The notes: a model not told the origin generated them from the letters alone. 64,000 bases of DNA from Chlorokybus atmophyticus (GCA_009103225.1 RHPI01003261.1:228902-292901); one strand, 5' to 3'; counted from the first letter of the stretch, positions 8,564 to 51,924 are shown. Made by a program: numbers and translations.

Positions 8564-9360
8564 CCTGGCCACAACCTGCCGCACCTTAACCAGAAGACAT
8601 TCAGTGTCTTACTTGAAGTGGTGCTTCAGTAAGGCACTAAATCTTAGTCTACTATATATCTGTTAAGTTGTCTGTTATCCTTGCGGCATTCAGCCCGCAG
8701 TCACTGCCTTAATGGCTGGGCAATCAAGGGGCACAACGCCTGCGGTCAGTGTCTTATTGCTGCAACCCCGTAACAAGCTGACATCTGGCGTTTTGGTGGC
8801 ATGCAAGCTGGCGGCGGCGGCGGCGGCGGCGGCAGAGGCATTGACGTGGGATTGACGGCTTGAACGACGGGGTGTCTGGGGTTGGCGCCAAGAGATAGCA
8901 GGAAACAAGCTTGTTTTGCATCTCTGCTTTTTGCGTTGGAAAGGTCGCTGCTGCTGCTTCCTACGTTGGGCAAGGCAGGAAGGTAGGGCTTGCATGAGCA
9001 CCAGGCTTGGTGCTGTGTTGACTTGAATGCATGTTTGCTTAGTGACTTGCGTTAGACTCCGTCTTCAGGGCTTTGGCTGGAACTGTCTGTGCGTGCGTGT
9101 GTGCGTGTGTGCGTCTGTGTTTCTTGCATGCGTACAAATCTGGTGGATCCCTGTCGATGTCAACAACATGGACATGTGCATTAGACAGCGGAGTAAGTAG
9201 ACCACATATTACTAATCACGGAATGCTTATTGTTCGTATTGTTCGTTGCCAATCAGGTCGCTTGAGACATTTGCTGGTTTGTTGGCTGTGCAGCGAGATA
9301 GCATGGCGTAGCCGTGAAGTGTTAGCGTGTGTGGGCTTGTAAGAGAAGGGAGGACAGAAA

Positions 9361-14515: not shown

Positions 14516-17413
14516 TTACCAGCTGCTTCTGACTCTGCAGCAGCCTTTGAAGGCGGAGATGTAATCTTCAGTGTCTTTTTTGGCACCCATTGATTGACAC
14601 CGCGCCCTACTGAGGGTACACCTGGTCTTTGCGTTCGAGCAACCTGGCATGTGTCGATGGTGAGGGTAAGATACTAACGACTGCAAGCCACACACTGCAT
14701 ACTGCACTGCAGACTGCTTAGACTCGCTGCAAACTGCACGAAGACGTGCCTGAGTGTAGTCGGTGTACACGGATGCATACACGTACTGCTGATCTGGCAA
14801 GGCGTGCTGTAGTGGAACATAAGGGGGTGCTGCTGGGTTGGGTACGCTGCTGCTAACAGGTGTTGGAACCACCGGCATCCTACACAAACATGCGCATGAG
14901 ACACTGAAGTTGTTGCTCAATGCTCGGACATATGCCACGCCTGCATGGGCTTTCGATGACAGCAGTCAATACACAGTGGCACACACACAATCATATCGTA
15001 TGTCATGAACACCAGTGCTGCATGCAAGGCATGCGTTGTTGAACAGAGGTCGTACTCACCAGACTTGCTGCGTGCCAGGGTACACATACTGCGGTTGTTG
15101 ACTGCTGTAGTGCGTGATGAGCCCTGCGCCAGTCATAGTCACCTGGGGAGCTGCATACTGCAGACCACCTGCCACATACACACCATTAGAGACAAACCCA
15201 CCCACGAGATTGGCGACCAAAGTAAGCACTTGCATGATACCCACCGGAGCTATGCTGAACACCATAAGCTTGAGTTGGCTGATAGTAGCTCTGTGTACCG
15301 GCCCGGCCTTGACCTCGGCCACGGCCTTGTCCCCTCCCTCTGCTGTTATGGCGTTGCTGCTCCGGTCCAGCGGGAGCAGCGGCCTCCGTGTGAGTCTGCG
15401 AGCTGCTCGATCGTCTCGCGACCTGTGCTTGTGACTGTGCCTGTGACTGCGTATGCTTCAGAGGCCTTTCGTACCGCTCGGATGCCGTTTGCGTTGCGGA
15501 CGTTGAAGTGGCTCTGCTGGCTGCTGACTGGGCTCGTTGCTGGGTCGCACGCGGTTGCGGCATGCTTCGCGATGAACTTCGTGCATCACCCGACAACCTG
15601 GAGGCCAAATCACAACATGAGTGGGAAAGCAGGGCAACCAACTCTCTGTGTAAGCCATGTACATAAATGAATGCAAGATATGCACAAACACGTACTCAGT
15701 GGTGTGGAACATGCGAGTTGCGACGCGAGCAGCAGGCTCGTCATCAGTGTGCTCCGCTGGGCCATCACTAGTAGAAGCATCCCTACCCCTTCCCCTGTCT
15801 CGACCCTGCGACCGGGGCACCCCTCTTGAACCCCTGGAGCCTCTGCCCTGCGCATACAGTGACAGTCAGACCCAGCATGATGCATTGTACAGCACACACA
15901 CACAACATCCACTGCGCTTACCCGCCCTCTCGACCCTCTACCACCAGCACCTGACTCCAGTGTTGCAAACTTGTCGTGGGCCCACTTGTCTTGGTCTGCA
16001 GAGTCCCATAGTCTTCTTCCCCTCGCGGAAGGTCGCCTGCATCGCATGTGAGAAACAGCAAGCCAATGCTGTATATGTGCCGCAAACTTGCGCCTCTTGC
16101 AAGCTTCACCTGGGTTTTCCACCGCTCTCTCCAAACCGATCGTCGTGCATGTAAAATGCGCCGGATGTGGGCACCACAAATGGCTCCTCCTTTGCCTCTG
16201 CTGGTGCAGCCTCTGCAGCTCCTTCTCCACTCTGTTCTTCCTACAAAGACATTACACTCATCCATTGTATGCAAGAGCACTGCATGTTGCGCAACCCGTA
16301 TGTATGCAAAATACCTAGGCAGTGACTGAGCAGCAATGAAGGACCATGCAACTGGTAGGCAAGCTGAGACTGTGCATAGTTGAAACCTGTCCAACAATGG
16401 CATGCAAATGGCAAAGGGTAAGCCAGGCATCGCCATACCTCGGCTTCACCCTCATCGGTGGCATACTCACGGGGAGCTACTTCAGCATCGGGCTCGGCCT
16501 CATCCTCTGAGCCGCTCCCTGCTGCACGGCGCTGGCCAACCTGCATGGTATTGTTGCTTAAGCTGATCACAATGCGTGTGGAAAAATGTGCGGCGCTCAT
16601 GGCAGCATGCAGCATTGCAACGTTCGACTCCGACGCAATTGCCCCATGCATCTTGACTGCGCACTTGAAAGCAAACATTGCATACGCAGAGGCAACACAC
16701 ACCCATGCAGTGACATGTGTTCTTATACTACGTAGTAAATAATTTCTATTTTTGAAATCTATCCTCCTCTTACTACTAGATTACAATGTCAACTAATTGT
16801 ATATATATATATATATATATAGATATATATATATATATTCTTTTACACCCCTCTGGGTTTCCCCGGTTTTTGATTAAAATTATAAAGAAAGGGTTACCAC
16901 AGAGTGGAGGGAACAGTTTACTACGTGAAGCATGGACTACAACGACTTGCACCTGTCACTGCTGTGGTCGTTATCGTGAGCAAATGCAACCAATGAATTG
17001 CCGTTCAGCTTGCGCGATCACTGCCGTACACTACTCTGTGTTGTGTACAGCAGCTCACAGTGCACCGTCTCATGTTGCACGAAGACGGATGCAGCCGAAA
17101 CTGACTGAGGCACCTACACCACTCCCCACGACCAGCCACAGACAAATGCAGAATGGCAATTGACACATGTAAATTGGACGATGACTAAATGTGCAAGGAC
17201 AACCAATAACTGCTACGGCGTGCAGCACACCGAGACGCTTAATCACAGTTCTGCTGCTGCTGCTGCTGCTGCTGCTGTGACAACACAAACAAGCTTGTAG
17301 GAGTTTACCTCGGCGCTGCCGTCCGACTCGTACGCCTCCTCTTCAAATTCTCCCTCCTCACCCGACACGTACTGCTCCTCCTTCAACTCCTCCTTCCTGC
17401 CATCGTCCGCCAT
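14516..17413 (-). CDS. CASC3: CASC3/MLN51/Barentsz (Btz-domain) exon-junction-complex protein, multi-exon
   Basis: Acidic first exon MADDGRKEE...YESDGSAE; Btz motifs EPFVVPTSGAFYMHDDRF (~16130-16190) and RRLWDSADQDKWAHDKF (~15965-16020); RG-rich middle region. The 3' end is approximate. Confidence 0.88.
16800..16838. repeat. (AT)n microsatellite
   Basis: AT run with one interruption, in a CASC3 intron. Confidence 0.9.
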
Positions 17414-17561
17414 GCTTGCCGCCTCGCAGGCGCCAACAAACAGGGCTGGCAAGCAGGGCGGTAAAACCCTAACCAACAACAACGCGTCAAGCGTTGTGGC
17501 AAGCGTTGCAGCCAAGCGTCCGCACAAAACGCTGCTGCAAACCCTACTAGGCAGCCATTTG

Positions 17562-18935
17562 ATGGCGGCGGCGGCGGCGGCGCAAAGGTTGTCGCCGTCG
17601 TCCGCTGCGGCATGCGCATGGCTGCAGCCAGCCGTCCCGGGTGAGGGCCTCGTCGTTGTGCGCGGTTGCGCTGCAGCAGTGCTGATGGGTGGAGGCGTTG
17701 TAACAGCGGGAGAGGAAGAAGATGAGACCGGCGAGGTGATTGTCTACTCGTTGGAGAAGCTCTCTCTCAGCGCTGAGCCGTCCAGCAGCAAGCAGAGTCG
17801 GCCACAACAGCCTGACGGCAGTCCGAGTCCCCCCTCTGGACTGCTGTCGCCGGCAGGCGCCGAGGAGGAGCCGAGCGAAGCTCAGCCTGAAGGTGATGGT
17901 AGCGCAGCTGAGGAAGATGAGTGGGAGACTGCGGCTGAGCAGCTCGTTCCTCCTGTGAGGGTTGAGGAGGAGGAGGAGGAGGAGGAGGAGGAGGACTGGG
18001 AACGTGTTGAAGTGCCTGCCGTGCAGCCAGCTCCAAGCGGCCGCAAGCCAGCTGAGGCGGTCTCCGCAGGCAAGCGCGGACGCGGCGCATTCAGGTACGG
18101 TGGCGAGACAGATAGCTTGCACAGCGACGGCGATAAAGCTGCTGCTTGCGAGCACGCCAACGGCATCAGTGACAATCGCAGCAGAACACAAGGTGACTCA
18201 CGTTAATGTCAACCTGAAGTCACTTGATCTGCATGCGCTTTCACCAGCCATGCAAGTTGCATACCTGGAACTCAGAGCTCGTGTCCGTGTATTGCAGGGT
18301 GCGTTGGTGAGTCCAACGAGCATGTTCTGGAAGTACATGAATTCTCGCCAGCAATCCGGACTTCAGAAGTAGAAAAGCTGTTTGCCGGCTATGACCAAGA
18401 TGGCCTTGCTATCAAGTGGGTGGATGATACCCACGCCCTTGCCATCTTCCGCTCTACAGCTGCTGGTTAGTGTTGTTTCGCATACGCTGATGTGTTCATG
18501 GAGCTTTGCTGTCCACTGGTAGCCAAACAGAAGCTTCATGCAGCTCAAGCAGCACTGCGAGGCGTTAAGGATGCGCGGTTCCGTATCAGACGCTATGTTA
18601 ATGCCTCTCCTGCGGTGCGCATTTATTCCCATGCAGGTAAGCTTGTTGTCATTATGTGAAGGTGTGTGTCTTTCTATACGCACAATCTCGCCCCATGGTA
18701 CGCAATAACTCATGCGTATATGTTTGCAGAGCTGCTACCCGCACCCCCTCGACCGGCCACCACTGCAACCGTTGCACACAGGCTGATCATGGGTACATTG
18801 CGGAAACAGGGAGTATCTCTGCCTCCCAGCCAGTATACCAATCAGTTGCGGGCGGAAGAACGCCAGCTTGCCGGTGAGAGGCTGCGCAGACAAGCCAACC
18901 GCAACAGTGCAAGAGCGTCTGCTTGGGATGACTGA
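17562..18935 (+). CDS. R3HCC1: R3HCC1/R3HCC1L-like RRM and coiled-coil protein
   Basis: RGRGAFRY; RRM exon HVLEVHEFSPAIRTSEVEKLFAGYDQDGLAIKWVDDTHALAIF (~18300-18465); RPATTATVAHRLIMG; terminal ...RASAWDD*. Confidence 0.85.
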
Positions 18936-22834: not shown

Positions 22835-24571
22835 CCTGACAAATAGTGCCCACAGCCAAGTTGATGTAAGCAGCACGCACAAAAGTGACGCTGAACGGTA
22901 CGCAAACACACACGGGGCGTGCCTATGACAAGAGCTGTCACGCAGAACAAACGGACGCAAAATCAACAGTAGAAGGCTGTGCAGACATCCAATCAGACCA
23001 TGGTGGTAAAATTGCATATACTAGGTGCCGCGAGACACAAGGTGAGAGGCATGGCTGGCCCACGTAGCAAGACGGTGTGACTAGTCTTTGCAGAAAACCC
23101 TAAAGCTTATCGAAACTGTGTGCATGCTTGCAAACAGAAGCAGAATTGCAAGCGGACCGTACCTGGCGACAAGAAGCTCCGACCAAGCTGTCCAACCAGG
23201 TCACCAGTAGTTGCTACTGTTCCTCAAGCTTCTTGCAAGAACTAGCAGGCGCGTGTGCCTGTCAGCCCAGACTGCTAGCCTGCTCTTGCTTGCGGACTGA
23301 CGCCTGGCCTAGCTCCTTTGGCGTGGTTCCCTTGAACCGAGACAAACACCAATTATTGCACAACACTGGGACACACGCAAGTTGCGCCGCTAGACACCAC
23401 CAGAAGCGTGGCCACGTGGAACCCTACAAGCTTAAGCTGCTGGGCCCAACACCAAGGCGCTCCGCGCCGCCACCAACGCCGTCGCCACCGCCAAAGGAAA
23501 CTGCGTTGGTGTACGCCTAGCATACATGCCTTGTTGCCAACATCTCAATCCACGTAACATTGCCACACGCCCGGTTGAAGCAGCTAAATTAACGGAGGTA
23601 GCTGCTGCAGCATTATTGCCGAGTTCAACCTTTCGTGTGCACGATGCACCCGACTTACAGAACCCGTTTCCCGGCCTGTCAAGTCGTGACAGGCGGGTCT
23701 ACGACCGATTCTACAAGATCGCGCGGTGCACATGACAGGTTCAAATCGGTAATAATGAACTCGGCAAATTGCGGCAGGAAGACCCCAATTGGGCCCGCAA
23801 CATGGGTTCATTGGGTCTTGTTACATGAGCTTTGCAGCGTGTGGCCTCCACGCTGTGGCGTTAGAATCAGGAGGCGAGGGAAGTTAGTTAACTGCTGTGC
23901 TAGCGGCAGGGAGCTGACGTCGGCATCCCAGCCGTACACCAGATTCTTCGGGCGCTGGCGTACGCAAATCCGGTACGTTCGCGTGTTTGAAGCTCGAACG
24001 TGCATGGTCCGGTGGTGTATCGCGGAATGGAATGGTGGGAGATGATGACAGCAGGCAGAGTGACAATAGGTGTGATGATGACAACGGATGTCACGGCACC
24101 AATTGGTACTATGAATGATGCAGTGTAGTGCCAAACAGTCACGACGCTAATAGGAAAATGCTTGTGCCGGCTGTCTGAGATTGAAGTGAACGAACGGTTG
24201 CGATGGCCTCTGGCGACGTAGATTGCCGTCACTCTGTGGGTGACACTGGGCTGATTTGCAGGGTCGACTTACACTTGTTCACCGCCACTTCAGCGTGTTC
24301 AGTCGGCGCAGTTGGCGTCGTGTTCAACGAGAGTCAGCGCTGTTGATCAGTGGCGATGTGCTGTGTGGTATACGCGTTGTTTGCAAATGCCACCAGTCGC
24401 CGATCACCGTTTGTTGTCGTATTATATTGATGTGATATGCTGATAAACAGCCGTGCGGCGAGGTCGGTAGGCATGATGTCGCCGAATGTCAACGGTGTGG
24501 GATTCAAACTTTGCGCAAGGAGAGCGCCACGCATTCAGTGTGGTCTTGTGTAGTTGGCGGCGGCGGCGGCG

Positions 24572-27500
24572 ATGGCGGAGAATGTGGTAGACGTGGCCGC
24601 TCTCGTCGAAGAGCAGCGACAACGGCTGGAGGCGCTTGAGGCTGCTTGCAAGGTGCGCTGCCTCAACGAGAAAGATTATGCCAAGCGTCGTAGGAAAGAG
24701 GACAAGCATGTGGTTAGTCAGCTCAGGGAGGAGCTGCAGCTAAGGAAGTCCATGATGAATGCCACCAGTGTGTTCATGTATGCCTTGACGTCCGGACGCA
24801 CATGGAGCTGGGTGGGAGACGACCTTGTCATGAACCCGCTACCGGGGGTATGGGTATGCAGTGTTGCGCCTGAACCAACTTGTGTTGTACATGTGCTGCA
24901 GAAGTGTCCTGCCTCTGGCTGACAGCGGGTGAGTGTTGTGCAGGATGCACCTCGTCTACTTGCGAGCTCCCAAGTCGCGATGGGTGAAGCGGTGCGCATT
25001 TGATGGTAGCTTGACTATCATGCAATGCTCTCTGGCAGTTAATGTAGGCGCTGACCTGCTGACCTGTAGAGCCAAGATGTCGAGCTGGATAGTTCAGAGT
25101 CTGAGGATGATGATCAGGAGAACAGAGCTTTTGCATCGGCGCTGCCGAACAAGCGGCAGAAGCAATATCACCCTGCAGGAGCTTAGCAGGTGCCGTCTGC
25201 AGCTGCACTGCATCAGCAATAGGCACCCAACTCTCGTTATGATCGTGACGGCAATCGCGTAGTGTTTGGGTCTACCCTAGGCAGGCTAAATGGTAATGCA
25301 AGATTGATTCCGAAAACGCCCAATACGCCTGGCAATCAAGCGCCAGGTGGGCGCATGCAGTAGTTTGTCCAGCAGTTCAACGCCAATGACTCTGTGTAAC
25401 TGGCTGTGTGATTGTTAAAGATGCTCGTAGTGTGAGTTTGTGAATGCCGTGTCACTGTGATGCCGGAATGTGATGTGCTGTATGTTAACTGATTGTGGAT
25501 GTGTGTAGGAACAGTGCCTGTGCGCAGTGTGGGCTCTGCACCCGTGCATGCTCCTGATGCTACACATAGGCAGACACGCATTTCAGCCAAGTTGAGGTAC
25601 CAAGTTTTGCTGAGTGACAGTGTGACTGGGCTACGCATAGCTGTTAGCCACATACTCTAGTCTGGACTAATTTACACATGCCGCTAAGTCGTGCTGTCAA
25701 ACTTATTGTCCATTAGTAAGCCATGCACACCTGAGAGTGGGACACGCTATACACTGCTAAAGCGAGGCCACATATGTATATTGCATGGGCGCAGTTCTTG
25801 CAGCGGGAAGTGCAGCGCCTGTCGACCGAGCGGGACAAGGCTTACGTTGAACATGCCCGGCTGTCGGGGGAGTTAATTACACTGCATGCTGCTATGCGTG
25901 ACAAAGAGGTACAGGTGCATCCCGACGATGATGGTGCCACAACACGGGCGCGGCAGGAGGCCTCTGCATGGCATGCCAAATGGCAGGTCAATTGCTTGCT
26001 TGCATGTGATGGGTGTGGTCTGTATGCACGGTGTCACGATGGGTGCGCGTACCTTGCTTGTTGCCTATATGGTGATGCATCACTATATAGAGGTGAGTAT
26101 AATGTACTGTGCAGGACGTCACAGAGCAGCTGCACGCTCAAGCGACGCTCAATGTGGCCCAGCGACAACAGGCTACACAAGAATATGAGGAGTTGCTGGA
26201 AGGGACCGACAACATGCGGCAGCACGTGCAGGTGCAGGCTAATTGTCGACAGGAGCTGTGATGTGAGTGTAAGCTTTCAAGTGAACAGCAATGACCTGTT
26301 GGTACTGAATAGGTGTTGGAGGCCAGAGTACAGGAAGAAGTGGAGCAGTGTTCCAGGGAACATGTGCAACGTCTGGCAGCAGAGAACGACCTGGCAGGTT
26401 ACCGATGTAGGCTGGTGGAGTTGGAGGACGTCGTCGCAGGCCTGCGCGAAACATTGCGTATGAGTCGAGCAGCGCAACCAACAGCACATGATGCATTAGT
26501 TGCTGAGGAGGTACACCTGCTGTTTGAAGACAATGTACGCACGGCAGCAGAAGAGGACGTACTTGGTGATTTGGCAACTGCAGTGAAGGAAGTGGCTGCG
26601 CAGTTGTTGCAAAGGGACGCCGTGGTTATGCTTACTGCTGTGGCTGCGAAATACAACATCAGGCGGGCCAGAGTGTTGTTGAGGGCGGTGCAATCCCGGC
26701 TGCCCGGCGCATACCAGCACGTGACAGGGGCAAGGGGTCAAGGAACTCTTCTCATTGCTGCCTGGGCTGACCCCTTAGCCTGTCTGCTACGGCATGCCAT
26801 GCGTGTGACCGACGTGCCAGTCGCCACACAGTTCAGTGCGAGTGGTTGGTCTGCATCTGACGCAGATGATATTCCCCTACCTGTCCTGCGTACAGTGAAC
26901 AAGCTTATGGAGGCAGAGCGTGAACGCCTGGTGGAGCGTAACAAAACGGACTACGACTTGCGCTTTGTGGATTGGTTAGCAGAATGGGAGACATCTGGTG
27001 CAGTATTGCGCACATTGTTCGGAGCAATTACGGGTCTGAATGCGATGGAGAGGGTGAAGACACCAGGGCCGCGACACAAGCACGCCGTGACAGTCTTGCG
27101 CAACAAAACGCTGTTTCTACTGCGCTCCGCAGTGTATGCGAGGAGCAAGTGGGCCTCATCGCCTGTGCATATGGCTGTGACAGATGCGGTGGATGCAGCC
27201 ACGAACGGCAACAAGCTCATAAAGACACTGAATCGCATTGGGGTTACCAACAGCCGGAGTCACCTGGATATACACATACACCGTTGTGCATTGCACAATC
27301 TCCATGCACCAGCGCGTCTGCAGCCGCAGACGGGGATGCATGTACTGGCATCCATTGACAACATGGATGTGCGAGCGGGGCACCAGGCCAAGTATAAAGG
27401 CAGGGCGACTGGCGACATTCATGCTACGTCCACTCAACTTACCTCGACAGTTGGGCGTCAAAGGACAACACCGCTGGAATTGGAGGTGAGCATAATGTAA

Positions 27501-30500
27501 CATGTCAGACGATGAGCTGCATGATTGATTAGACTGGTGTTGGCTGACGGTTTCTTGCTTGCCTTGCACAGCGTGGACGCAACCGCACGCTATCAGAGGC
27601 AATAATACAGCCACCGTTACCAGAGTCAATGCCGCCCCCCCCTCCTAGACCAAGGCCTCAAGTGACGGTGCGCAGCGAACCAATCCTCAATATGATGCCA
27701 GCCGAGACTGCAGCCATCGAATCATTCAGGGTCACAATGCACAACACGGTGGTCTTTCGGATGCGACAGGAGCAGCAGCAATCGTTGCCTACCTTAAAAG
27801 ACGACTGGGCCCGCTACCTGCACATCGCGGACAGTGAGACATCCACGGTGACCAATGACATTGAGTACCTGCCAGTGTTGCCCTTCTGTCCCGACAAGAT
27901 TGACAACCTGAAGGTTGCTCTGCTGCACCTGCGTAGCAAGGTTATCCTGAATGACACGCAAAGCAAGATATGTATTACGGGAGACCAGAAGACGTTTGCA
28001 CTCATGGTAGCACTGCAAAGGGCACAGCCAGGCTACTGGGACTGGTTGGTGCCCATCCCAGGTGACTTCCATGTGCTGATGAATATGCAGCCAGTGTTGA
28101 TGAAGATGACTTGGGACGCCGGGATGGATGCACTCTCAGTCGAAGGCGGTTTTTCAGCATCGACAGCGCGTAACCACTTGGTTGAAGGCTCTCATTGGAA
28201 GCGAATCCACAACTTCCTATGCAAAGTGTTCGAGGCAATCTACAGACACATGCATGTGCTGTGGTGGGAGCAAGAGGAAGCTGGTACAAAACAAACATGT
28301 GAGCAGGGCTGGGCGACGCATGGAGTCATGGCCCCCGGACCTCGCAAGTTCTTTGAGACTTGGTGTGAAGCAAAGGCAAGGACAGATGCTACATGGGCCT
28401 TCTGGTGGGGTTTCATCAACCGAAATATGTTGCATTACCTTGGTCTATTCTGCGCCGTTAGGCAGAGGATCTGGCACCTGAGACTGGCAAGCTAGAAGGG
28501 TCTGAGTCCATTACCATTTGCTTGGGATCGCTTCAACTACCAGAAGCTCATGACTCTTCACTTGGCGGAGCTGCAAACAGCCTGCATCACTGCTGGAATT
28601 GCTGAAGGATGGAGGCTTTGCAGTGAGTCTGACAGGTACACCAGGTCGGTTGGTTGCTCTTGACGAAGCACATGAGTGTCTCGTGAACCGGGACATGAAG
28701 ATGACATTATACAAGCCAATTACAGAGCAGCTCAGGCAAAAATCTTTGTACCTTGGGGAGCGAAGCCAGTCACAGAAGCAACTGAGTCGGCAGCTCCTAC
28801 TGGAAGCGGAACAGGGGAACCATGACATGGACGCTGATGCCGACGATGACCAGAGCAGGGTGCTGCGCAATCTGGCTGTTGACGCTTCGCATTGTGGCAG
28901 CGACCTACTGTATATAGCGAACTTGCTGAGAACCAATGGAGCTTTGGCAAGAGAGCCAAACATGCAGCTGACTCATCTCACATCGGGCATGCCAGCATCC
29001 CCGGCTGCATCTGCAGACCTTGCAAGGCACTACACCGTGGGTGTTGAGGCAATGAGCAGCTTTGTTAAAGTAGACATATGCAGAGAAGCACAGGCCTGCA
29101 AAGTCACTCGTAGGTACAACCTCGCCACCATGGCTCCATCAAAGAAACGCACTACCAAGCAGGCAACGGTGCTCAAGCAATACCGCCAGGAGATGCTCGT
29201 TGCCAAGAGGCTAGCATCAACTGGCGCCGATAAGGAGACCGTCACAGCGCGGTACTGCGAACACCCTTGGGCTCTGTTTGACGGGCTTAGTGGTAAGATG
29301 AGGTCGGGAGACAAAGCCAAGATCCTGTCCGAGGTGGCTTCTCATGATGCACCTTGTTGGTCGCACTCCTCACCGGCTGGAGTCGAATGCATAATCCTTG
29401 AAGGAATGTTTATCATCAACTAGGAGTGCCACTTGTCGCAAGGCACCTTTAAGGACTACATCAACCATCTGATGCGTACCTGTGTGCTGAGTAGACTAGC
29501 CAACCCCAGTGTTCGCAGCCTGCACATTGTCTTTGACACACCCAGATGGCAGTCCGGCGTCAAGTCCTCACTGCAACGTGCGCGTGACGGAGCGGGCAGT
29601 GCAACGGGCAAGTGTCTCACCATGGATACGGAGTTGCCAAAATCCTGGCGTAACGTGCTCAAGGACCGCAGCTTGAAGAGGTCATTGTGCGAGCTCATTA
29701 CGGAGTATCTGCCTCTCATGGTGGAACCTCACCTGCGACCAGACCAGGAATTGGTAATCGCTGGTGGTTCAGACAAGAGCGATGTGGGAGACTTAGCGCG
29801 TGTGGTGTCGCGAAGCTCAGCTGGTGACTGCGTAACGCGTGACATTGAGGATTACATGTGCAACCATGGTGAGGCAGACTCACGTGTGTGGGTGCACGCG
29901 CAGAATGCACCATACAATAACATTATGATCTTTTCACCTGACACGGACGTGACGGTGATCGGGCTGGCAGTCACCTAGAACTGGGATATGGCGCTCAAGG
30001 AAGTGACGGTACAGGTCGCGCAGCATTCGCGCGCTGGGTCACGTCCACCATTCATCAACCTCCCGCTCCAGCAACAGCATGTCAGAAGCATGCACCAGCT
30101 GCACAGTGTTCCAGAAAGACGCCGTGGTTGGCTGCTACTACTGATTTATGCAGCTACAGGTTGTGACTACACGTCATTCATAGGAGGAATATCCAAGCAG
30201 TTCATTTGGCGTACTGTGCTTGCGCAGCATGCAGACTTCATCACCGGCGATGTCAACGACGAGGAGCACGAGATGTGCTTCGCTGTGCTGCGCCTGATTG
30301 GGTGCTCCTATTTCGAGAAGTACCGCTCTTCTTTTTAATGCGGCACTCCGGTGTTATTGTTCTACGCTCTGCACGGCGCTAACGCAACCAGCAGCGATAA
30401 GGTTTATCTGTCGGACTGGCGAGAAGCCATCCACAAGACTGTCTGGACGAAAACGGCAACACCACGTGACACTATTCCTACTGTTAATGCCCTCTGGCTG

Positions 30501-30982
30501 CATGCATTGCGCGCTGCATATGCCGTCAACATGTGGCTACAGAGTTGCAGTCAGGACATGCAGCTGGGCGATCTGGCAGAGTATGGGTATCAGTGGGAGG
30601 ACGGCGTGTGGTATGCTGTGCGAGACCTACCACAAAACATGGATGCTGCAATATCTAGAAGACAGCTGCTTATGCATGGTTGCGGCTGCAAGGTAGGCAG
30701 GTGCAACAGCAAACGATGCAAGTGCAAAAAGGCCGGCAACTTGCTTTGAAAGCATGCAGCGACAGCTGCTCCTGCCTTGGCTGCGAAAACTCCAACAACC
30801 TGGACACCCACGAGCATGTGGGCAACGGCGGCGACAGGCCGACTGACGAGTGCACTGGCGAACCTTCTTCACCGACTGGTCTGCATGGCGCTGATTTACC
30901 AGCCGGCTGGACTTGGACCGACAGTGATGATGGTGATAGCGACGGGGAGGACTTGACCATGATGGACGTGGACGACATCTAG
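24572..30982 (+). pseudogene. Academ transposase (DUF6589-like DDE) + XPG/FEN1-like PIN nuclease + Cys8/CXC finger, with spliced coiled-coil N-terminus; inactivated
   Basis: LASIDNMD, ITGDQKTF, WLVPIPGDFHVLMN, ALDEAHECLVNRDMK; XPG-like ILEGMFII, LHIVFD, CNHGEADSRVWVH, FSPDTDV, ATGCDYTSFIGGISK; CGCKVGRCNSKRCKCKK..CSDSCSCLGCEN. In-frame stops end at 28495, 29423, 29978 and 30338, with frameshifts near 28570 and 30745. Confidence 0.88.
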
Positions 30983-31103
30983 CAAACCGTGGCAGGAGTC
31001 ACCTGAAATGCAGCCGCCGCCGCCGCCACCGCCGCCGCCGCCGTCGCCGCCTTTACCTGTGGCATGGTGTCAGATATTAGGGTTAGTAGCCCATTTTTAG
31101 GGT

Positions 31104-31450
31104 TGGTTCATCATCTGACCGGCACTGCAACGCTGCTGGCGGTGTCGTCAAGTCCAGCGACACCATTGACAATGTAAAGGCGTTGTGTCCGCATAAGGAG
31201 TGCACTTCCCGGGGACACGCAGGACCAGCAGCACCTCATCACCCCGTAACAGCTGCAAGATGATGGCACTCAGGCTGTCTACAACACGTGTGTGAAGTCA
31301 AGACTTCACATGGTCTTGCGCCTGCGCGATGGTATGCAGATCTTTGTGAAGACTCTCATAGTCCAGATTGTATCAGTTTATTAGTGGAGTCTAGTGACAC
31401 CATCTATGCAATGAAGGCCAATACGTCGTTAAATATGCAAAGTCCCGATC
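31104..31450 (+). pseudogene. Two tandem degenerate ubiquitin units (polyubiquitin-like remnant)
   Basis: Across frameshifts: LVHHLTG / VKSSDTIDNVKA / [19 protein letters not shown]...[20 protein letters not shown] (ATG 31334) / [13 protein letters not shown], colinear with ubiquitin and its [13 protein letters not shown] junction. Confidence 0.8.
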
Positions 31451-31914
31451 ATGTCGCAGCTCGCGACAACACGCCGATGGTCAGGGATAAAGCGCCTCTG
31501 GTTTGTCTAATCTGCCATGCCTTTGTCGTGAATAATGGTCGCCGCTCTCACCTTACTAGTCACCAAGCTCGATGCATAGAGTACCGCAACTTGTTTGGTT
31601 ACACAGCAGCTTGTTGGCATCATCATGCTGCTGGTCTGCACATCATTGACTGCCGGCGCAAGTTCAAGTGCAGCAGCCCAGAGTTCTACAACCGGCAGTG
31701 CACATGCGAGCAATGTGAACTTGCCCCCTTTGAATGGCACGGGACACCCATGCGATATATGCCGTACATACGCCCAGGCACAGTCCTCCAAGGCACTGTC
31801 GTCAATCTCATCCAAGTAAGCCATACGTATCACCTCGCATCAGTTGCCACCAACCAAAACCATGTTGCGTGCAAGCTCCCTTGTCGAGTTCACTGGCATC
31901 TGAGTCCTGTTTAA
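31451..31914 (+). CDS. Cys/His-rich segment of the Academ cargo (CLICH...HQARC...CTCEQC), putative Zn-binding region
   Basis: Open frame 31288-31914, continuous with the second ubiquitin remnant, with multiple CxxC/CxxH pairs. Confidence 0.45.
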
Positions 31915-32083
31915 TTGCAGTCTGTCATACGCAGAGTCAGCTTCGTAGATGCGGACGCGGGCCTGCACACCCTGTTACAACTGTGGTCGCGGGATCGAGC
32001 ACTGTGCCCCCCATGACGGTGAGTGGACATACAAGATGTGTACATGCTGTATGCGTCGGTGATGTCCGGCTTGCAGACGCTGA

Positions 32084-33309
32084 GTGACGCCATGTGCGCC
32101 TACACGGGCGTCTGCACTGCTGATCGCATACGATTTGCAGTCCACGCCAGCACTCTACGAGTTGATTCCGGCAGTGCGACAGCGCTGTCTCGACGGCGGG
32201 CCAGCACTTGTTGGCTTGGCAGTCCTGGTGCATTGGCCAGCCGACCAAGCGTGGTATGAGGGTCGCATCTACGCCTACAACAGCAGCCTAGGTGCGCATG
32301 TTGCTCCCAGGCTGCATGTGTGACGGCAACTGGTTCGCTGATAGGCTAATTGCACGTTAGGCCGCCACAGTGTGCGCTTCGTCGACGGTGACGTGCAGCA
32401 CATGGTCATCGACAAGCACAACATAGTGGCCGCGGTGTGCAGCAATGGTACTCGCCATTGCTTCCGCATCGGAGGTTGTCGAGTGCCTACCAACCGCAAG
32501 GCCCACCCGCCGTTGCCAACTCTAACATTATGGAGCAGGTCATCCCCTACGCTGGTCACACACACTGCACAGCTGCCCAACGGTGCACCGCACAGACCCA
32601 AGGTGCTTGACATATGTTGTGGTGGAGGCGGCGCCAGCATGGGGTTGTACCGTGCTGGATTTGACGTTACGGGCGTTGATATACTAGAGCAGCCCGACTA
32701 CCCATTCAGCTTCATCCACGGCGATGCCTTAACAGTTGACATCCAACCTTACAATTTAATTTGGGCTAGTCCACCGTGCCAGGCTTTTGCTCGTTGCATA
32801 CCTGAGTCACAACGCCGACAGCACTCGAGCTCGTGGCAACACAGCACTCTTCTGCACGCCTTGCGTGCACGCCTTCATGCTAGCGCAAACCTTTTGTCAT
32901 CGAGAACATCCCTGATGCATCTCAGTACATGACACCCAATATGGTGTTGTGCGGGACGATGTTCGGACTGGCCACTTTCAGGCACCGAGTGTTTGAGACG
33001 GTGCCTATCGTGAGCGTGGACTTGGTTTGCGATCACACCTCCAAGCGTCTTGGAGGACTTTTCGGACACCGCACACTGGTGCAAGCTGCAACCGACGCAG
33101 GAGACACTCAGCAGATGTACCCCGTCTATGGACAGGCAGCCTCACGTGGTACATTGGCTGGGTGGAGCATGGCTTTAGGCATCGATTGGGTATCAGCGGA
33201 GACAACATTAGTTGAGTGCATTCCCCCGGCCTACTCGGAGTATGTTGGCAGACAGCTATTGGTAGCACTTGGGTGTGTGCTATGCAGCTCGCCGCTGTCT
33301 TGGTCATGA
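32084..33309 (+). pseudogene. Tudor domain fused to a C5 cytosine DNA methyltransferase of phage/actinobacterial type; 1-nt frameshift near 32885
   Basis: Tudor LVGLAVLVHWPADQAWYEGRIYAYNSSLG|RHSVRFVDGDVQHM is joined by GT-AG intron 32292-32360 (branch point CTAAT at 32346). MTase motifs: I LDICCGGGGASMG, II VTGVDI, IV WASPPCQ, VI PFVIENI, VIII RHRVFE, X ECIPPAYSEYVGRQL. Confidence 0.88.
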
Positions 33310-33750
33310 ACACGATTGTCAGCAATGCGTAACACCGCGCTGGAACCCAACATCAACACCAACACAGCACTGCAATTGCAATCACACACACATGCACTAC
33401 ATTGGGTATATTCTACACACATACATGGATGCGCCATGACCATCCTGCTTCTCAACCTCAAACTTGCACAACACACAGCATCCTCACTCAACATCCATTT
33501 GCAACTGCCCTACATGTCATATTACATTATGCGTGCAGTTCGACACTTGCCACGCATGCGCTCGTACTGTTGTTGCATACTCAATCCTAGACGATACCTG
33601 GAAGCTGGAACATCGGAGGGCCTGCACAACCCTACAACAAGCCACTAACCCGTGACCACAACCCAGCATAATCACTCAATTTAAGAAGGGCTGCATAACA
33701 ACCCTTCAGGAAAGACCGGGTAGCTCAACATGCGTACCTACAGGCACGAC

Positions 33751-34760
33751 CTATACGGGCGCCACTGCATGTTTGTGACTAGCCAGATTTGTCGACCCCA
33801 CACCGCACCTGCGATTCTTCGGCCTCATCATCAGCTCTCTCCCCACAGAGCAACACGCACACCACCCAGTCGTAATGCTTGTTCCCAGCATCAACCAGTA
33901 GCTGCCATGTTCCTCAACCCTGCTACCGAGCACATGTTCAACAGTATATCCTAACCCGGCACGCAAGTTGTGCACCATCGCATAGCTTGCATGAGGCACT
34001 CATGCAAGCAATGCACACACAACGCACCACACGCACACACGCACGCATTGTGACTCAGAGCACACTGCACTCTGGGCTATCCACCGACTCCCTCACACCA
34101 CGTGCTTCAATGCTACTTCATGACAAAACCTACCATGATCTGTCGGCATGACGGGGTGCCAACCGCCACCCTGCACCAGCGGTGGAGGATGGGGCAAGCC
34201 CGGATTGTCATCGTCACCACAGTCACCTCCCTGCAGAGGATGCAAACTCCACTGGCCAACCTCGAATGGAAGCCACTCAGTGTCATGCCACTGCTCGACC
34301 CAATGTCGTCTCCGCCCTGGCTCCATATCACACTCAGTGCCAATCACCCACCGTGCCAATGCGACACCGCCTACCACATGCTCCACTATCAACAGCTCAC
34401 TACCAAGCCGCTGAGGAAAGCCCGCTGCGTTGCGCAACCGATGATGGCTAAATCTAAAACCAAACCCACCAGGCAACTCGACATGCAACTCCCGAACACC
34501 AGCAGCGCCTGCCATAGGCGCGCCACATACATGCACTGGCCAGCCGAGAGACACCTAAGCATCGACGTATCAGCACACAGGCACGTCCAGAGGTGCACGA
34601 TTATGCACGCATCCACTAGCAGCGTTCCACAAAAACACCTGCTCATATGCAGTCTGATAGAAAGACTGACTGCGTCGGATGGACGGCAGTTCACCGCCGA
34701 GAGCAAACAACGCAGGACAAGGCACACGCTTGCATCACCTAGCTCTGCCATTACGCGCGC
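33751..34760 (-). CDS. Third Academ ORF, hypothetical, spliced and decayed, convergent with the methyltransferase
   Basis: Open frames 34093-34554 and 33751-33999. Two segments have weak chromodomain-like starts (LIVEHVVGG; YTVEHVLGSRVEEHGSYW). Begins ~450 bp inside the right TIR. Confidence 0.35.
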
Positions 34761-35289
34761 ACGAACGCCCGAATAACACCGCCGCGTTGCCTCAACCACC
34801 GCCCCGCACACCTGCGCCTTCCGCCCCTCACCAGCCTTCAATACTCTGCAACCCTAACAGCGCTGATTTCCGTCGCACCTAGGATGACGGCAAACGGCTG
34901 CACCGCGCTGTTCCACGCACCACTGCCGTCTATCCACAGACGAACCACGTCTCACATACACACTTCTACAGTTTGTCAAGGGTGATGCACGGCCAACTGA
35001 CAGCGGACTGCCGACGACGCAACGCCATCGATCGACACTGTCGATCAGCGCTGCCACCGCTCTCGTCGCCGTCGAAATACGTAACTTCTACAACCACATC
35101 AACCGCGGCGAGCAAGTGTTGCACCACGGTCTTCAGCGGCCAGTTGGCGCTGTGCCACGCACATTTCGCCCGCCACAGCGCTGTCAGGGCCGGCACAAGC
35201 TTTGCCTGTAGCGATTCCCATTAGCGTCGTGACTGCAAAGATACAGGCGAACGGGAATCTAACTGTATGCTTCAAGACTCGCTTGAACG

Positions 35290-35780
35290 AGAGGTGCGGC
35301 TGATTAGGTCGAACGACACTACATGATTAGGGCACAAAAACACAGCACACGCGCATCACACCAGGGCCACCAGTGGCCATCACATACGGCACCCGCGACT
35401 ACCGGGCTGCGCGGTATGCGCGGCGCGCCTGCCTCTCATTGGCTAGGCGGCAAGTGGCCGTTCGATCTGTTTTCAATTAGATATCGGCCGTCTAAAGCAC
35501 ATCCCCACATCCTGTAACTGCTCAAATCTATGCAAACTAGCGGTGCGGCTGATTGGGCGTGTGACTTGGCCGGCCGGCATAGTGCACCAAGACACATCAC
35601 ACGCGCACCACGCACGACGGCCCAATGACATACGGCACCCGCGACTGCCGGGCTGCGCGGCCCGCCTGCCTCTCATTGGTTAGGCGGCAATAGGTTTCGG
35701 CCGTTGGATCTGTCACAACAAATCTCGACCGTCCAAAGCTCATCCCCACGCCATGCAACTGCTCACAATTTATGCGAATG
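35290..35780. repeat. Tandem duplication 2 x ~250 bp with ATTGG (CCAAT) boxes, promoter-like
   Basis: CATACGGCACCCGCGACT.CCGGGCTGCGCGG and GCCTGCCTCTCATTGG.TAGGCGGCAA occur in both units. Confidence 0.75.
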
Positions 35781-41049: not shown

Positions 41050-44000
41050 TCAATCCCCAGGAACGGGCGTCATCTCTTCAGGGCGCGGTAAACGCGTCAA
41101 CCGTAAATAGGCCCTGTTTGTCACGCGCGACAACGCCACATACCACATTCCAGGAGCAAAAGCTTCCTGCATGTGGACAACAGTAGTTGATTGTAGCGTT
41201 GCACCTTGACACTTGTGCACTGTCATTGCATACGCTAGCTGCAAAGGAAACACAGCTTTGTAGTACGTTTTGCCTTGAAACGTTGTTGTTTGCTATATTG
41301 TTCGGCGCATCCACATGGAGTCTGCCAAATGGTCAAATGTAACTTGTATACTGCTCACATTACCTTTGTAGTATCTAAACTGCGTCACTGTTCCCAAAGA
41401 CCCGTTGGCTACTCCATCTTGCAGTGAAACGTTTTCTAAAGCCAACACCTTTGCTCCCTTTGCGACTGAAGGTAATAAGTTGAACTTGGGCTTGTGAATC
41501 CAGTCGTACAGCTCGGGCACGTTCACTGCATTAGAAGTAAGTTGTATTGGCACAATGGTATCGGCTGCAAAACGTTGTCTCACAATCATGCTGTTGAAAG
41601 CCAGTGTGTCTTGTACATGTGAACACAATATGGTTGCATCACTTGGTAACTGTTGTAAGTACTCCGAAGTGACCAGACAGCCACCTAACGCATCTGCTAT
41701 CTCTGTTGAACTAGGTATGCCAGAACGAATCTGAATCAAGAATTGAGCAAACAGAGGGTCTGAAGCATGACGCACTGAAACAGATAGAACATGTTGCCTT
41801 CGTAATGGCCACCTCTGTGATGCAGAAATATGGCATTTGTGGCAAACCTGCGATGTGTCTTGGACTTTGTGTCCACAAACTGCTGGCAGTTGCTTGTGGT
41901 CACCAACCAATACAACGCCGATTGTTTGTAGAAATTCTGGTCCATGAACTTGCTGTAAGCGCAGCATCACCAAGTCAAACAACCGCGATGTCATCATGGA
42001 AAACTCATCAATAATAAATACTCGACAATGATGTAACAGTTTGTAAGCATCATCCATAGCAGTTACAAACCGGAGTTGCTGACCGTTGACAGGTATTGCG
42101 AAGTTGGAATGTACAGTTGAAGCAGATGAGCTGAGCCGCAAAGCCGCAGCGCCAGTTGTAGCACTGAGTAAAACAGGTATCCCAGCAACGCGCAACTTGT
42201 GAGTGATGAATTTGGTCAAAAATGTTTTGCCTGTTTCTGGACAACCAGATATCACATGTAGACCTACCGGTGTTGCAATGATACTACTTGCGGTGCGTTC
42301 TTGCTGGCTGGTCAAAGAGAGATTGTTCGCAAACGCAAACTCCTCAACATTCAATGTACCTTGAAACATCGGCGCCGATACATCTGAGCCCGTTGTCACA
42401 GTTGAAGCTGAAGATGCAGGATTGGATGATGAAGCTGTTGGATACTGCGTGGTAGGTTCTGGTGCAGTTTGACTGTCTGTCGGACCAGCTGCAGCCATAG
42501 ACAAGGCATTAATAGCATTATCAGTGGTCTGCATCATGGCATTCGTCATATGGTGAATCTTAACATCATTGTATAGATGACGTTCAGCATAGCGCGTGAC
42601 ATGTGTCAACAAACTGCGGTTTGTGTTGTTAATGAAACCCCGCAACACACATTCTTTATAGTAAGTGCGTGATTGGTTGTTCAAAGAAATCAAATCAACT
42701 TTAGAGCGAAAAGTAACCCGCTGAAGAAGTAAATTGAAACAAAACCCTTCAATGCTGTGTACAGGATGGTAATCCGTGAATCTAATGATGCGCGGGACAG
42801 CTAACTCATAAACGAATGCATTCAGTCTGTCTCTTAAAGTACGCACAGTGTTATGTGGCACAGTGTCTCCATCTCGGTGCATGTACTGTCGAAAGTAATT
42901 GTACATTGTGACTCTTTCTACCTCGTCAGGCCTGACACAATAACGATGAATGGGATGCACAATCACTGTCCGTGCACGACAGTTCACTATGCGAGAACGA
43001 TTGTTAGGCAAACGCGTGTCAACATATGTTACATTAGACGACATTTGCATGATGGGAATATCCAAACATATCAAAGCAGCTTCAGCTGGAGCAATGGGTT
43101 TGGACAAGTACATTGTGTTCAATATGCGCAATTCGTTAACAGTCAATCCTTGCAAACCGAGTGCATTGGTGTCTAATGCATCATCAACAGTGCCACAAGG
43201 TTCCATGTTTGTTGTGTACTTGACTAAATACTTGCTCCAATGACTGTCAGTGACTTGCAACACATTACAATGAGCACCCCACAACAATAAAAGCACTGGA
43301 TGTGTGGGAACAACATTGCGGTCACAAGTGCGTGGTCTGTAATAATCGTACCTACGCGTTTCTGTGTTGAACTGAGGTCGACGATCTGGTTGTACGGGAT
43401 ACGGAAAACCCTTGTCGCACTTGTTGTCGAATGCTCTGCAGCCACTGCCAACATCAGAACACTTGTGCATTTGCTTGCGTACAACATATTCATAAAGGAC
43501 TCGCAGTTTAGAATCGTTGGTACAATTATTTGCTGATTTGCATGGTCAAAATCTCCGGGGATAAACGCAGTAATTTCACTGCCAACTCGTTTAACATCGT
43601 CGGGATGTAACCACAACATAACATGTGCATGCAAAGATCCACGGTGTTGTGTTTCATACCTGATAACATAGTGCATCACACGTTCAAGGGTATCTTTTTG
43701 CATGATATATTCTTCAAAGAAGGTGCTGAACCGATGATGAAACAAACGTGCGCACTCCACAGGGGCATCGCGCCAACTAAGTTGCGTGGAGACATTGTGG
43801 AGAACATTCTGCAAATCAATGATCTCAGGGAATTTGGTACTGGACACTTCATTTGCAGTCATGGTGACAAAGAGATGAGGCATACCCCAATGCTCAACCA
43901 GACACAGCAGCTCACTCAACTTTTGTCGATGCCAACTCGGAGATCCAATGATGTCACCAGGGACACGAAATTTTACAGCGTTTTTGATGGCATCGTTGAT

Positions 44001-45293
44001 TGTGGCAGTAGGTCGTTGTTTGAGGAACTTTTCAATATTAGCGTCCACAGCAACTTCGCGGCACTTTCTAAATGTGAGAAGTGATTAATAGATTTGGTAC
44101 ATCAACAGCAAATAAGGCTTGTACAATGTGAAAACTGAGAACGATTGTGTAAGACGGAACTTGACATAGTCTGACAGTCTGCTGTACACGTTACCATCAA
44201 AGAACCCACGATCGTGCGGAAACAACATGGGAAACAGAGCAGACTCAACAGTTAAACCAGGAATGTTGTACGCACCACCTGTATCCATGTGTATCAAAAG
44301 AGAAACACAAGGCTCACGCAGCGACATATGTCAAACGCGCAACATGGTGTCCACTGTGACTTCAACTGTGCTGCGCGAAGGAAATGGCAACAAAGTGGTT
44401 AAAACGTATGTGTATGCTGATTCACCAGCAATGTTCAAAGGATTACGATCTTGTGCACGAGACACAATGCTACGAATAGTAGATGAACCGACAGTGGGGA
44501 TGCCGTCAAAACCAAAGGGTTGTTCTGCCAAGGTCTGATATTTCTGAACCAGAGTGTTGGACGATAATAGCTCGCTCAACAACTCCAGCAACAAGATGGC
44601 ATGTTGGTTTTGATGTGTAAACTCATCCCAAGTGATAAACGGACCGTTAATCATATTCAACTGCTGAATTTGGCCCGAAGTGAAACTGTATGAGTTATAC
44701 AAGTCGCAAAGCGCCATGGACGTGTTAACAAGGGACAACATCTGCACTACCATTGGATGTGTCTCCAACAACTTGCGAATGTACACTGCGCTGTGTAATA
44801 CAATGTAACTGGAACGCTCCGACCCGTGACTACATCGATGGCATTGGTAGTAATCACTATCACACTTGGTATAATCGGACATAAAGACATTAGCCAAATC
44901 ATATGGTGCAACGGTGGATACTGATTGTCGATACATTGGACGATAAGTAGCAGCAGCAAAGTAAAACTGTACATGCCCGCACAAAGAACAACATTGCATT
45001 CGCGTGGCAAACTTACATTGTGCATCTTGCCAACAGGAAAGCATATCATCGCAGTCGTCCCACAATTCGCAATGCTGAGACAAATCGCAATGTTGCTCAT
45101 AAGTCATAGCGGATGACGAAACAATACACCTGGAACATATCAACCGCCCTGGCATTTGTCGCCATCCAAAAGAACCATCTCGGCACAGTCCAGCAATGAG
45201 GGCGTGCAAGGGTGCAAATCCACATGCACAATATCTCTGATGTGTAGCAAAATATTGCGATATGATTACATATGCGGCGATATGGTGCAACAT
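41050..45293 (-). pseudogene. Helitron Rep-helicase (HUH Rep + PIF1-family helicase), frameshifted
   Basis: ALFPMLFP; PHLFVTMTAN; HUH YETQHRGSLHAHVMLW; Y2 KYLVKY; Walker A variant SGCPETGKT; IIDEFSMM; LVGDHKQLPAV; [16 protein letters not shown]; YVALSRV. Split over 5 ORFs. Confidence 0.93.
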
Positions 45294-45349
45294 GGTGCCA
45301 TATGATTAGCTAATGCTGTTAAGTGTTTCAAAACTTAATAATCAACGTA

Positions 45350-50700: not shown

Positions 50701-51924
50701 ACATGCAGTTTGTGCGCCTGCCCATGTCCGACAGTCCATTCTAGGTCCCATGTCCGACAGTCCAAATCGACAGTCGCGGTTGTGTCCCGTGCATAGTCGC
50801 GTACGCGCGCTGCTGCGCACGAAGCAATGAGTCCTGATGCCTCCAATGGTTTGCAGGTGATAAGATTTTCCTGAGAGCCATGGTCATGAACATTGCCGGT
50901 GACAATCCAGCCCAAAGCGAGATGGGGCAATTCAAGAATGGCGGCTTATGCGGTTGCAGGGCTTGTTGCCTGCTGGCAACTCATATCCGGCACTCTACTG
51001 TCACCAAAAAAGTCACTCAAGATCCCAGCACTGGCAACGATGTTGTTGAAGAAACTCGGAGCAACAGGACCGACTTCCACTATGCTAGCAGCCGCTACCA
51101 CAGTCGCCATCCATTTGCCAAAAGAACTGCAGAGGCCACATACCAGCTGGCCGATGAAGTTGAAAGCACAGAAGATCCTAATCGCAAGAAAGAAAAGGCC
51201 AAGAAGTATGGCGTCAACGGGCTGTCGCCTTTGTGGAGGCTTTGGCAGATGTACAAGTTTGACCCATGTCAGGACATGGTCTTTGATATCATGCACACGC
51301 TAGCCGAAGGACTGGCCAAGAGCTTGACAGCCTGCACTCTGATGGATGGTGGGGACGAGCAGGTCAGCAAGGCTGACATCGACAGTCGGCTGTCCGTGAT
51401 GAGAAATGCAAGACCAAGAGAGGTGAAGAATGGTAATTGCTGGCCACACGACCTCAGCAGTCGCCTTGGATGGTGGAAGGCGCAGGAGCACCAGTTCTTC
51501 GTGCAATTTGGTGTGCACTATGTTTTTCACAAGCTGCTCAGCGAAAAAAGGAGAGATCTTGTCATGTGTCTCCACATGATCTTCCGCTTATTCTTTGACA
51601 TCTCACGGCGCTTTGGTTGGGATTCCGACCGCCTGGAGCTCGCAGATGCATTGCTCAGGTACTGGAAGGTCAACAGCGAGATCTGCTTTGGCACCAATAA
51701 AAAGATTTTAGAGCATATTGCGGGAACTTGCCACCTGCTTGACAACATCCGTAGACACGGCAGCCATGACGTGTTTTGGTGCTACGCCGCTGAGCGCGCT
51801 GTGAAGCTGTATGTCAACACCCCGTCCAACTGCAAGGATTACGAGATCAGCTTTATGAAACGTTCTGTCAGGAGATGGTTTGTGCGACTATTTGGCGTCA
51901 TGCGTGACGATCAGCGTTCAGGCC
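47781..51924 (+). pseudogene. CACTA-type (Tnp2/Transposase_21-like) transposase, spliced, interrupted by a solo LTR and a copia remnant
   Basis: YTACTRCNYLF; DPRNIGLMLHSDGF; LNPFMKPMVDELEDLY; IAGDNPA..G..GCRAC; FDIMHTLAEG; WKAQEH; HLLDNIRRHG...WCYAAER. In-frame TAGs end at 49306 and 49519. Confidence 0.85.
49667..50124 (-). mobile_element. copia-family solo LTR (458 bp)
   Basis: TGTTGA...TCAACA termini; perfect 5-bp TSD ATGAA (49662-49666 and 50125-50129); near-identical to LTRs at 51925 and 53513. Confidence 0.93.

Follow-up and report, generated by a model that had tools for sequence, protein, structure and literature searches.

The stretch of Chlorokybus atmophyticus DNA analysed here (64,000 nucleotides of GCA_009103225.1, RHPI01003261.1:228902-292901; referred to below in its whole length as the window) contains, at positions 24136-35235, an 11.1-kb Academ-type cut-and-paste DNA transposon that has been inactivated by mutations. 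One pair of terminal inverted repeats (TIRs), with its target-site duplication (TSD), encloses two genes that nearly abut on the same strand: a gene for a very large transposase and, directly downstream, a gene for a small putative C5 cytosine methyltransferase (C5-MTase) linked to a Tudor-like domain.

The left end of the element, at 24136, starts with CAGTCACGACGCTAAT, and the reverse complement of the same words closes it at 35235. A repeat finder pairs a TIR core of 21 nt at 24136-24156 with 35215-35235, with 1 mismatch (95% complementary); in a gapped alignment the match resumes beyond an 11-nt indel, an insertion in the right arm, for 14 of 15 bases, after which the similarity fades. The left TIR can accordingly be drawn at 24136-24171 on the + strand and the right TIR at 35189-35235 on the minus strand, the latter spanning about 47 bp with the indel included. 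Searched as a pattern with up to 3 mismatches, the TIR occurs at these two sites only within the window, where 0.00 occurrences are expected from 100 shuffles. Abutting both ends from outside is the identical tetranucleotide CAAA (24132-24135 and 35236-35239, by direct reading), and at neither end can the TSD be extended to 5 bp or the TIR be continued outward. The TSD evidence comes from one insertion only. The TIRs and the TSD, which an earlier note on this DNA had pointed out, are real features of 24136-35235.

The transposase gene, on the + strand, extends from about 24572 to a TAG stop at 30980-30982 and encodes a protein of about 2000 amino acids (aa), read in pieces that change frame. 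One open reading frame (ORF) piece, 27548-28492, matches the Pfam family DUF6589 at 7e-7. Among 1.84 billion representative proteins, phmmer found 491 relatives of the transposase; the two best are from Chlorokybus, a streptophyte alga, and many of the others, 1200-2250 aa in length, belong to amphioxus, a crinoid, an annelid or metagenomes. By tblastn, the long homologues are colinear with 27700-30800 (about 1060 aa) and, more weakly, reach back to 26667 (26667-27497). Their alignment shows three acidic motifs, then a second conserved module and finally a C-terminal run of CxC cysteines. The columns GDxK, GDWHxLKN and DExHE are conserved in 20 aligned sequences, and the copy in the window retains the first Asp (27983-27985), the second Asp (28064-28066) and DEAHE (28662-28676). 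These mark a probable D-D-E core at 27572-28960, + strand, for which DUF6589, the homologues and the alignment speak; its AlphaFold2 (AF2) model has a pLDDT of 80.5, and its top 7 Foldseek matches are all to the Hermes hAT transposase, though weakly (E 0.09-0.4, TM about 0.2).

The second module, at 29346-30516 on the + strand, is a predicted 5' nuclease domain of the FEN/XPG/XRN fold. Its AF2 model (pLDDT 89.9), built for homologue P0151 with the rows from the window in its alignment, matches 5' nucleases of the FEN superfamily only: XRN1/Rat1 at 1e-6, and Rad2/XPG, EXO1 and FEN at 5e-4 to 4e-3 in Foldseek. The fold is thus nearest to XRN rather than to XPG itself, while a sequence profile of the domain has EXO1 as its sole PDB match, at 0.013. 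The cysteine cluster ("Cys8") lies at 30678-30790, + strand, is interrupted by a frameshift, and aligns with the C-terminal CxC of all the long homologues. No helicase is present in the protein. The earlier note's transposase-XPG-Cys8 gene has been recovered, on the + strand, with a probable D-D-E core, a 5' nuclease domain and the CxC cluster.

Less can be said of the N-terminal part. The probable N-terminal exons, at 24572-26460 on the + strand, are drawn from the ORF layout (ATG at 24572; coiled-coil-like ORFs 24554-24919 and 25735-26460), and neither a Pfam match nor homologues were found for them; the codon-usage score of ORF 24554-24919 resembles that of the transposase exons (as a yardstick, seven known exons scored in the correct frame give 0.11-0.21). 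A conserved N-terminal region of the transposase follows at 26313-27485, + strand, recognised from the weak tblastn matches of the long homologues. Between it and the D-D-E core an 86-nt GT-AG intron is predicted at 27486-27571, + strand (GAG/GTGAGC ... CACAG/), which links frame 0 to frame 2 without a stop and at which the coverage by homologues dips.

In the Academ superfamily, AcademX elements have a nuclease and a TSD of 3-4 bp, and AcademH elements a helicase and a TSD of 9-10 bp (PMC10045372); the present element fits AcademX because of its D-D-E, nuclease and CxC architecture and its 4-bp TSD. With the AcademX lineage (Kapitonov & Jurka 2010; Kojima 2020, Mob DNA 11:15) it shares the very large protein combining a probable D-D-E core, XPG/FEN-type nuclease and C-terminal Cys cluster, as well as TIRs, a 4-bp TSD and relatives in amphioxus, echinoderms and annelids. 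It differs in having at least one (predicted) intron in the transposase gene, in being an inactivated copy and, above all, in its second gene for a Tudor-linked C5 methyltransferase. Accessory domains of other kinds do occur in the superfamily: an Academ-like protein, P0252 (2252 aa, on a 13-kb ENA contig), has an N-terminal NADAR domain besides DUF6589.

The transposase gene of this copy is dead, with four in-frame stops and two frameshifts, all on the + strand. The stops are TAG at 28493-28495, through which the homologues align straight, TAG at 29421-29423, TAG at 29976-29978 and TAA at 30336-30338, each placed by the homologue alignment. One frameshift, from frame 2 to frame 0, lies at 28574-28580, with consecutive homologue residues at 28573 and 28581, and the other in the CxC cluster at about 30744-30754, with consecutive residues at 30743 and 30755; since homologue residues are consecutive across these gaps of 7-11 nt, they are frameshifts and not introns. 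With the methyltransferase described below, and leaving the ubiquitin remnant out of the count, the copy has at least 7 inactivating lesions, and every gene in it is broken. Two other ways of reading the stops were tried and rejected. An alternative genetic code with TAA and TAG as sense codons would have to contend with the position of the four stops in variable, non-Gln columns, with the additional frameshifts, and with several long ORFs in the window that contain no TAA or TAG at all; short introns would have to contend with homologues that run straight through, with no extra length. All four of the nonsense codons are TAG or TAA. Throughout the window the dinucleotide bias is uniform inside and outside the element (observed/expected CpG 0.6-0.9, TpG/CpA about 1.5, GpC about 1.3), as might be expected if methylated CpG had long been undergoing deamination in the host genome.

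The cargo begins directly downstream of the transposase stop and on the same strand, as the earlier note had it: a (GCC)13 microsatellite, found by repeat search, occupies 31013-31051, and similarity to ubiquitin sets in at 31106. (At 24555-24578, close to where the transposase ORF begins, there is another GC-rich triplet run like (GCC)13.) The ubiquitin similarity, at 31106-31419 on the + strand, consists of a decayed unit at 31106-31333 followed head-to-tail by a second, at 31334-31419, of which the first third is present. Unit 1 was detected by tblastn, using a ubiquitin query, at E 8e-6 with 36% identity over residues 5-76, and contains in-frame stops and frameshifts; the second unit opens with an exact MQIFVKTL, joined as in polyubiquitin, and fades after about 28 residues. 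No Pfam match was found in these fragments, which are far more decayed than the methyltransferase. This part is a remnant and not a working domain, and of the two ubiquitins proposed earlier there remain one decayed unit and a third of another, not two whole units. Next comes a Cys/His-rich ORF at 31450-31911, + strand. This is the Cys-rich part of the earlier note; the frame is open, yet it has no recognisable domain by Pfam or PDB search, and its codon-usage score is near zero.

The Tudor-like domain, at 32204-32428 on the + strand, is read from two exons around a 69-nt GT-AG intron at 32293-32361. Once this intron is removed, the spliced peptide gives six weak Pfam matches, all of Tudor type (53BP1, Hsr-9, Crb2, LBR, PTM/DIR17 and SAWADEE; E 0.004-0.56); the unspliced halves give no Pfam match. 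The "Tudor" of the earlier note is a tentative call, all six matches falling short of the gathering cut-offs.

The methyltransferase itself lies at 32585-33309, + strand, ending in a TGA stop at 33307. Motifs I, IV (PPCQ), VI (ENI) and VIII (RHR) and a C-terminal IPPAY, as expected of the C5-MTase that had been proposed, are all present in canonical order and align with 26 relatives; a 1-nt frameshift, seen on reading the sequence, interrupts the gene at about 32876-32886. There are 1183 homologues at 50-59% identity, many of them annotated as PF00145, and the full-length matches have 40-46% identity with E values of 1e-52 to 1e-63. The pieces from the window alone score under the Pfam cut-off for PF00145. 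A profile of the family matches solved C5-MTases (3g7u at 7e-7, DNMT2, M.HaeIII, DNMT1 and M.HhaI); these matches include DNMT2, which is a tRNA enzyme, as well as an rRNA m5U enzyme, and DNMT1 is matched at motif I only. By motifs and homology, then, the gene encodes a member of the C5-MTase superfamily.

Members of this methyltransferase family are enzymes of 200-330 aa and are abundant on phage contigs (69 IMG/VR loci, and a contig with phage-type neighbours). The nearest relatives of the enzyme in the window make up a clade whose variable region contains an inserted MBD (loci L001, L124:8803-9858, L125, L126:2874-3716 and L127:10001-12486), on contigs that hold D5 primase-helicase, topoisomerase II, PLOD/2OG-oxygenase, aquaporin and kinases, which are giant-virus-like gene sets. 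A Klebsormidium nitens protein, GAQ92615.1, encoded on the 17-kb giant-virus-like scaffold DF238021.1, belongs to the same cluster, its gene model fusing the methyltransferase to a HIT hydrolase. In a quick maximum-likelihood tree the enzyme in the window groups with the MBD clade (SH-aLRT 95); its branch is long and lies within phage and bacterial sequences. Descent from the eukaryotic DNMT1, DNMT3, DNMT5 and DNMT6 classes was tested and not found; since the nearest relatives are phage and bacterial sequences and the giant-virus-like clade, the enzyme is not of DNMT1, DNMT3, DNMT5 or DNMT6 type, and its ancestry is, as judged from these relationships, that of phages and giant viruses. The MBD-carrying enzymes resemble it in family, in being its nearest tree branch, in combining a reader with a writer and in having similar C-terminal tails. 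Their reader, however, is an MBD inside the variable region, whereas here it would be an N-terminal Tudor-like domain; and their intronless genes have viral neighbours such as D5 primase-helicase and topoisomerase II instead of a transposase. The occurrence of Tudor and MBD fusions in sister lineages suggests repeated invention of reader-writer enzymes.

The combination of transposase and methyltransferase is unusual within the Academ superfamily and is known from one fossil. The earlier note had proposed an AcademX transposon carrying its own methyltransferase cassette, and had considered a separate nested insertion with termini of its own as an alternative. Such termini were looked for, and neither inverted or direct repeats nor a duplicated target have been found flanking 30983-33310 or 30983-35188. 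The proposal thus holds as far as both genes lie within one TIR/TSD pair with no termini of a nested element; it does not extend to presence of the cassette throughout the family, which one copy cannot supply. The reading that we favour, at a probability of roughly 0.55, is that this is a decayed AcademX-type copy in which a virus-derived methyltransferase and reader cassette was aboard at the last transposition, and would have acted as a reader-writer when intact.

A number of points weigh against this. The element is known from a single copy; within the window there is no second copy or fragment of it and no empty-site paralogue with CAAA, and the two large protein libraries searched hold no relative of the transposase above 47% identity. 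A 16-mer of the TIR gave 49 matches in metagenome contigs, none longer than 16 bases and all attributable to chance. No methyltransferase was found among 158 related transposase-like proteins, nor near relatives in five genomic contexts. The copy being dead, selection on its cargo is not assessable. The Tudor call lies below the Pfam thresholds; the DNA substrate and target motif of the methyltransferase are assumed, and no characterised member of this family of small enzymes was found among the sources searched. Membership of AcademX, finally, is well supported but not formally closed, resting as it does on architecture, TSD length and DUF6589.

The main rival explanation is that the cassette is a passenger, a captured gene or set of gene fragments (by transduplication, as in Pack-MULEs or Helitrons) present in one lineage or one copy, which never served the element. 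We consider this unlikely, but it deserves to be taken seriously: it would suit the ubiquitin part, badly decayed and resembling a captured polyubiquitin fragment, the Cys-rich stretch, in which no domain is recognisable and the codon score is near zero, and the lack of a methyltransferase in the sampled relatives of an element of which one copy is known. What it explains less well is the methyltransferase itself, which is full length, retains every catalytic motif and has one frameshift, a density of lesions not above that of the transposase, and which is fused in frame, by way of a spliced exon, to a reader-type domain on the same strand right after the transposase stop; moreover, the DNA methyltransferases (DNMTs) of retrotransposons, for which a similar logic has been proposed, are under purifying selection (PMC5890265). 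One dead copy cannot separate a functional cargo from a passenger cassette.

It is a good deal less probable that the cassette came in after the Academ insertion, through a secondary insertion or rearrangement involving, for instance, a piece of another mobile element or of a giant virus that had become endogenous, and was never mobilised by the TIRs. The nearest relatives of the methyltransferase do lie on giant-virus-like contigs, the window is rich in repeats, with a Helitron 6 kb away, and no second copy has the cassette in place; but the lack of repeats or a target duplication around the cassette, already mentioned, speaks against such an event, no other viral gene is present in the window, the cassette has an intron and eukaryotic domains, and in base composition and dinucleotide bias it matches the remainder of the element and differs from the viral scaffold. 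That the TIR/TSD pair is a coincidence, leaving a transposase relic beside an unrelated decayed host methyltransferase gene, is very improbable, for although identity of a 4-bp flank arises by chance about 1 time in 256 and no empty site confirms the insertion, the 21-nt inverted match with 1 mismatch, at two sites only and expected 0.00 times in shuffles of the whole window, resumes after its indel, brackets the transposase in the orientation to be expected and has the identical tetranucleotides exactly at its outer ends.

If the favoured reading is right, with the cassette aboard a functional element, its origin would have involved the fusion of a eukaryotic reader domain to a virus-derived methyltransferase, and the cassette would have been in place at the last transposition. 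The ubiquitin piece may be a captured fragment of a polyubiquitin gene, possibly serving as a promoter or 5' exon; its far stronger decay compared with the methyltransferase suggests that it had been reduced to a non-coding remnant while the element was still active. The intact cargo could then have worked as a reader-writer enzyme, the Tudor-like domain docking on methylated histone tails and the methyltransferase adding 5-methylcytosine (5mC) de novo on the element and its surroundings. One possible use is that the element damps its own expression and thereby gains the tolerance of the host; another is that binding of the transposase at the element ends is tied to methylation state. Transposase binding that depends on methylation state occurs in bacterial IS10 and in maize Ac. 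A third possibility is that the DNA of the element takes on the methylation state of resident DNA, as has been argued for the DIRS-Dnmt3 elements (PMC5890265). Nothing in this copy is active now. The further proposal, that an Academ family once spread here with a working reader-writer methyltransferase assembled from a giant-virus/phage enzyme and a eukaryotic Tudor domain, is put forward tentatively and may well be wrong. If it were true, cut-and-paste transposons, and not retrotransposons alone, could disseminate a de novo 5mC writer, and transposons and giant viruses would be exchanging methylation enzymes within the same hosts.

Eukaryotes silence their transposons most commonly by cytosine methylation. 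A transposon with a 5mC writer of its own reverses the usual roles. Such a reversal is documented in retrotransposons of dinoflagellates and of a single charophyte, and a cut-and-paste example would mean that a second class of mobile DNA shares it. The elements in question are SymbioLINE-Dnmt and SymbioDIRS-Dnmt3 of Symbiodinium and Gypsy-Dnmt3 of Klebsormidium nitens (PMC5890265). They are alike in being mobile elements with their own C5 methyltransferase, and in the logic proposed for them, which is self-methylation or blending into a methylated host genome (PMC5890265). They differ in being retroelements, with the DNMT inside the element's own coding regions, whereas here it is a separate downstream gene in a cut-and-paste element; and the DIRS and Gypsy elements carry a eukaryotic Dnmt3, where the present cargo has a small enzyme of phage/giant-virus type joined to a Tudor-like domain. 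The explanation given for retroelements, methylation of the new cDNA, cannot be carried over unchanged, because DNA transposons move as double-stranded DNA that is already in chromatin.

Among cut-and-paste elements, enzymes acting on epigenetic marks are carried by fungal transposons, with a TET/JBP dioxygenase, and by HarbingerS and MuDR elements of Phytophthora, with a SET methyltransferase (PMC12730594); these cargoes remove or oxidise 5mC or methylate histones, whereas the one described here would write 5mC, the usual silencing mark of transposons. De Mendoza et al. 2018 (PMC5890265) refer to DNMT-encoding DNA transposons of marine viruses, citing Bao & Jurka 2013. The claim that an Academ element with a DNMT is without precedent is therefore to be narrowed: no report of a DNMT in any Academ element was found in a literature search of incomplete coverage, but DNA transposons encoding one have been described outside it. 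The ancestry of the methyltransferase, as reconstructed above, would connect phages, giant viruses and a eukaryotic transposon, and so offer a concrete route by which new DNA methyltransferases might enter eukaryotes. This wider meaning depends on intact copies: from the present one we learn that the two genes were once combined, but not that the combination functioned.

Between the methyltransferase and the right TIR lie about 1.9 kb (33310-35188) in which no gene is supported by Pfam, PDB or codon score. The convergent third ORF of the earlier note falls here, and finds no support: neither Pfam nor PDB yields a match for the minus-strand ORFs at 34096-34853, whose codon-usage score is near zero. 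An inverted similarity between 24571-24827 and 34301-34390 was considered and set aside as being at chance level (E 0.14), with no similarity at the protein level. In the same region, 34017-34047 forms a 32-bp inverted match of 94% identity with 9090-9120, the second site lying 15 kb upstream of the element.

Directly to the right of the insertion, 35286-35765 holds a degenerate direct repeat of two units, each about 245 bp long and 82-94% identical in blocks, which Tandem Repeats Finder missed. The Helitron-like element mentioned above occupies 41053-45341 on the minus strand, 6 kb beyond the right end of the Academ copy, and has long intact ORFs matching Helitron_like_N at 3e-24 and PIF1 helicase at 4e-18. 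No dinoflagellate spliced-leader relic, Rfam family or tRNA was found in the window. Several long ORFs have no Pfam match (50880-51983, 52478-53335, 17412-18206 and 15005-15670), and the ORF at 50838-51980 contains no TAA or TAG in its 381 codons; the long ORFs lacking Pfam matches may be further mobile-element genes of kinds as yet unclassified.

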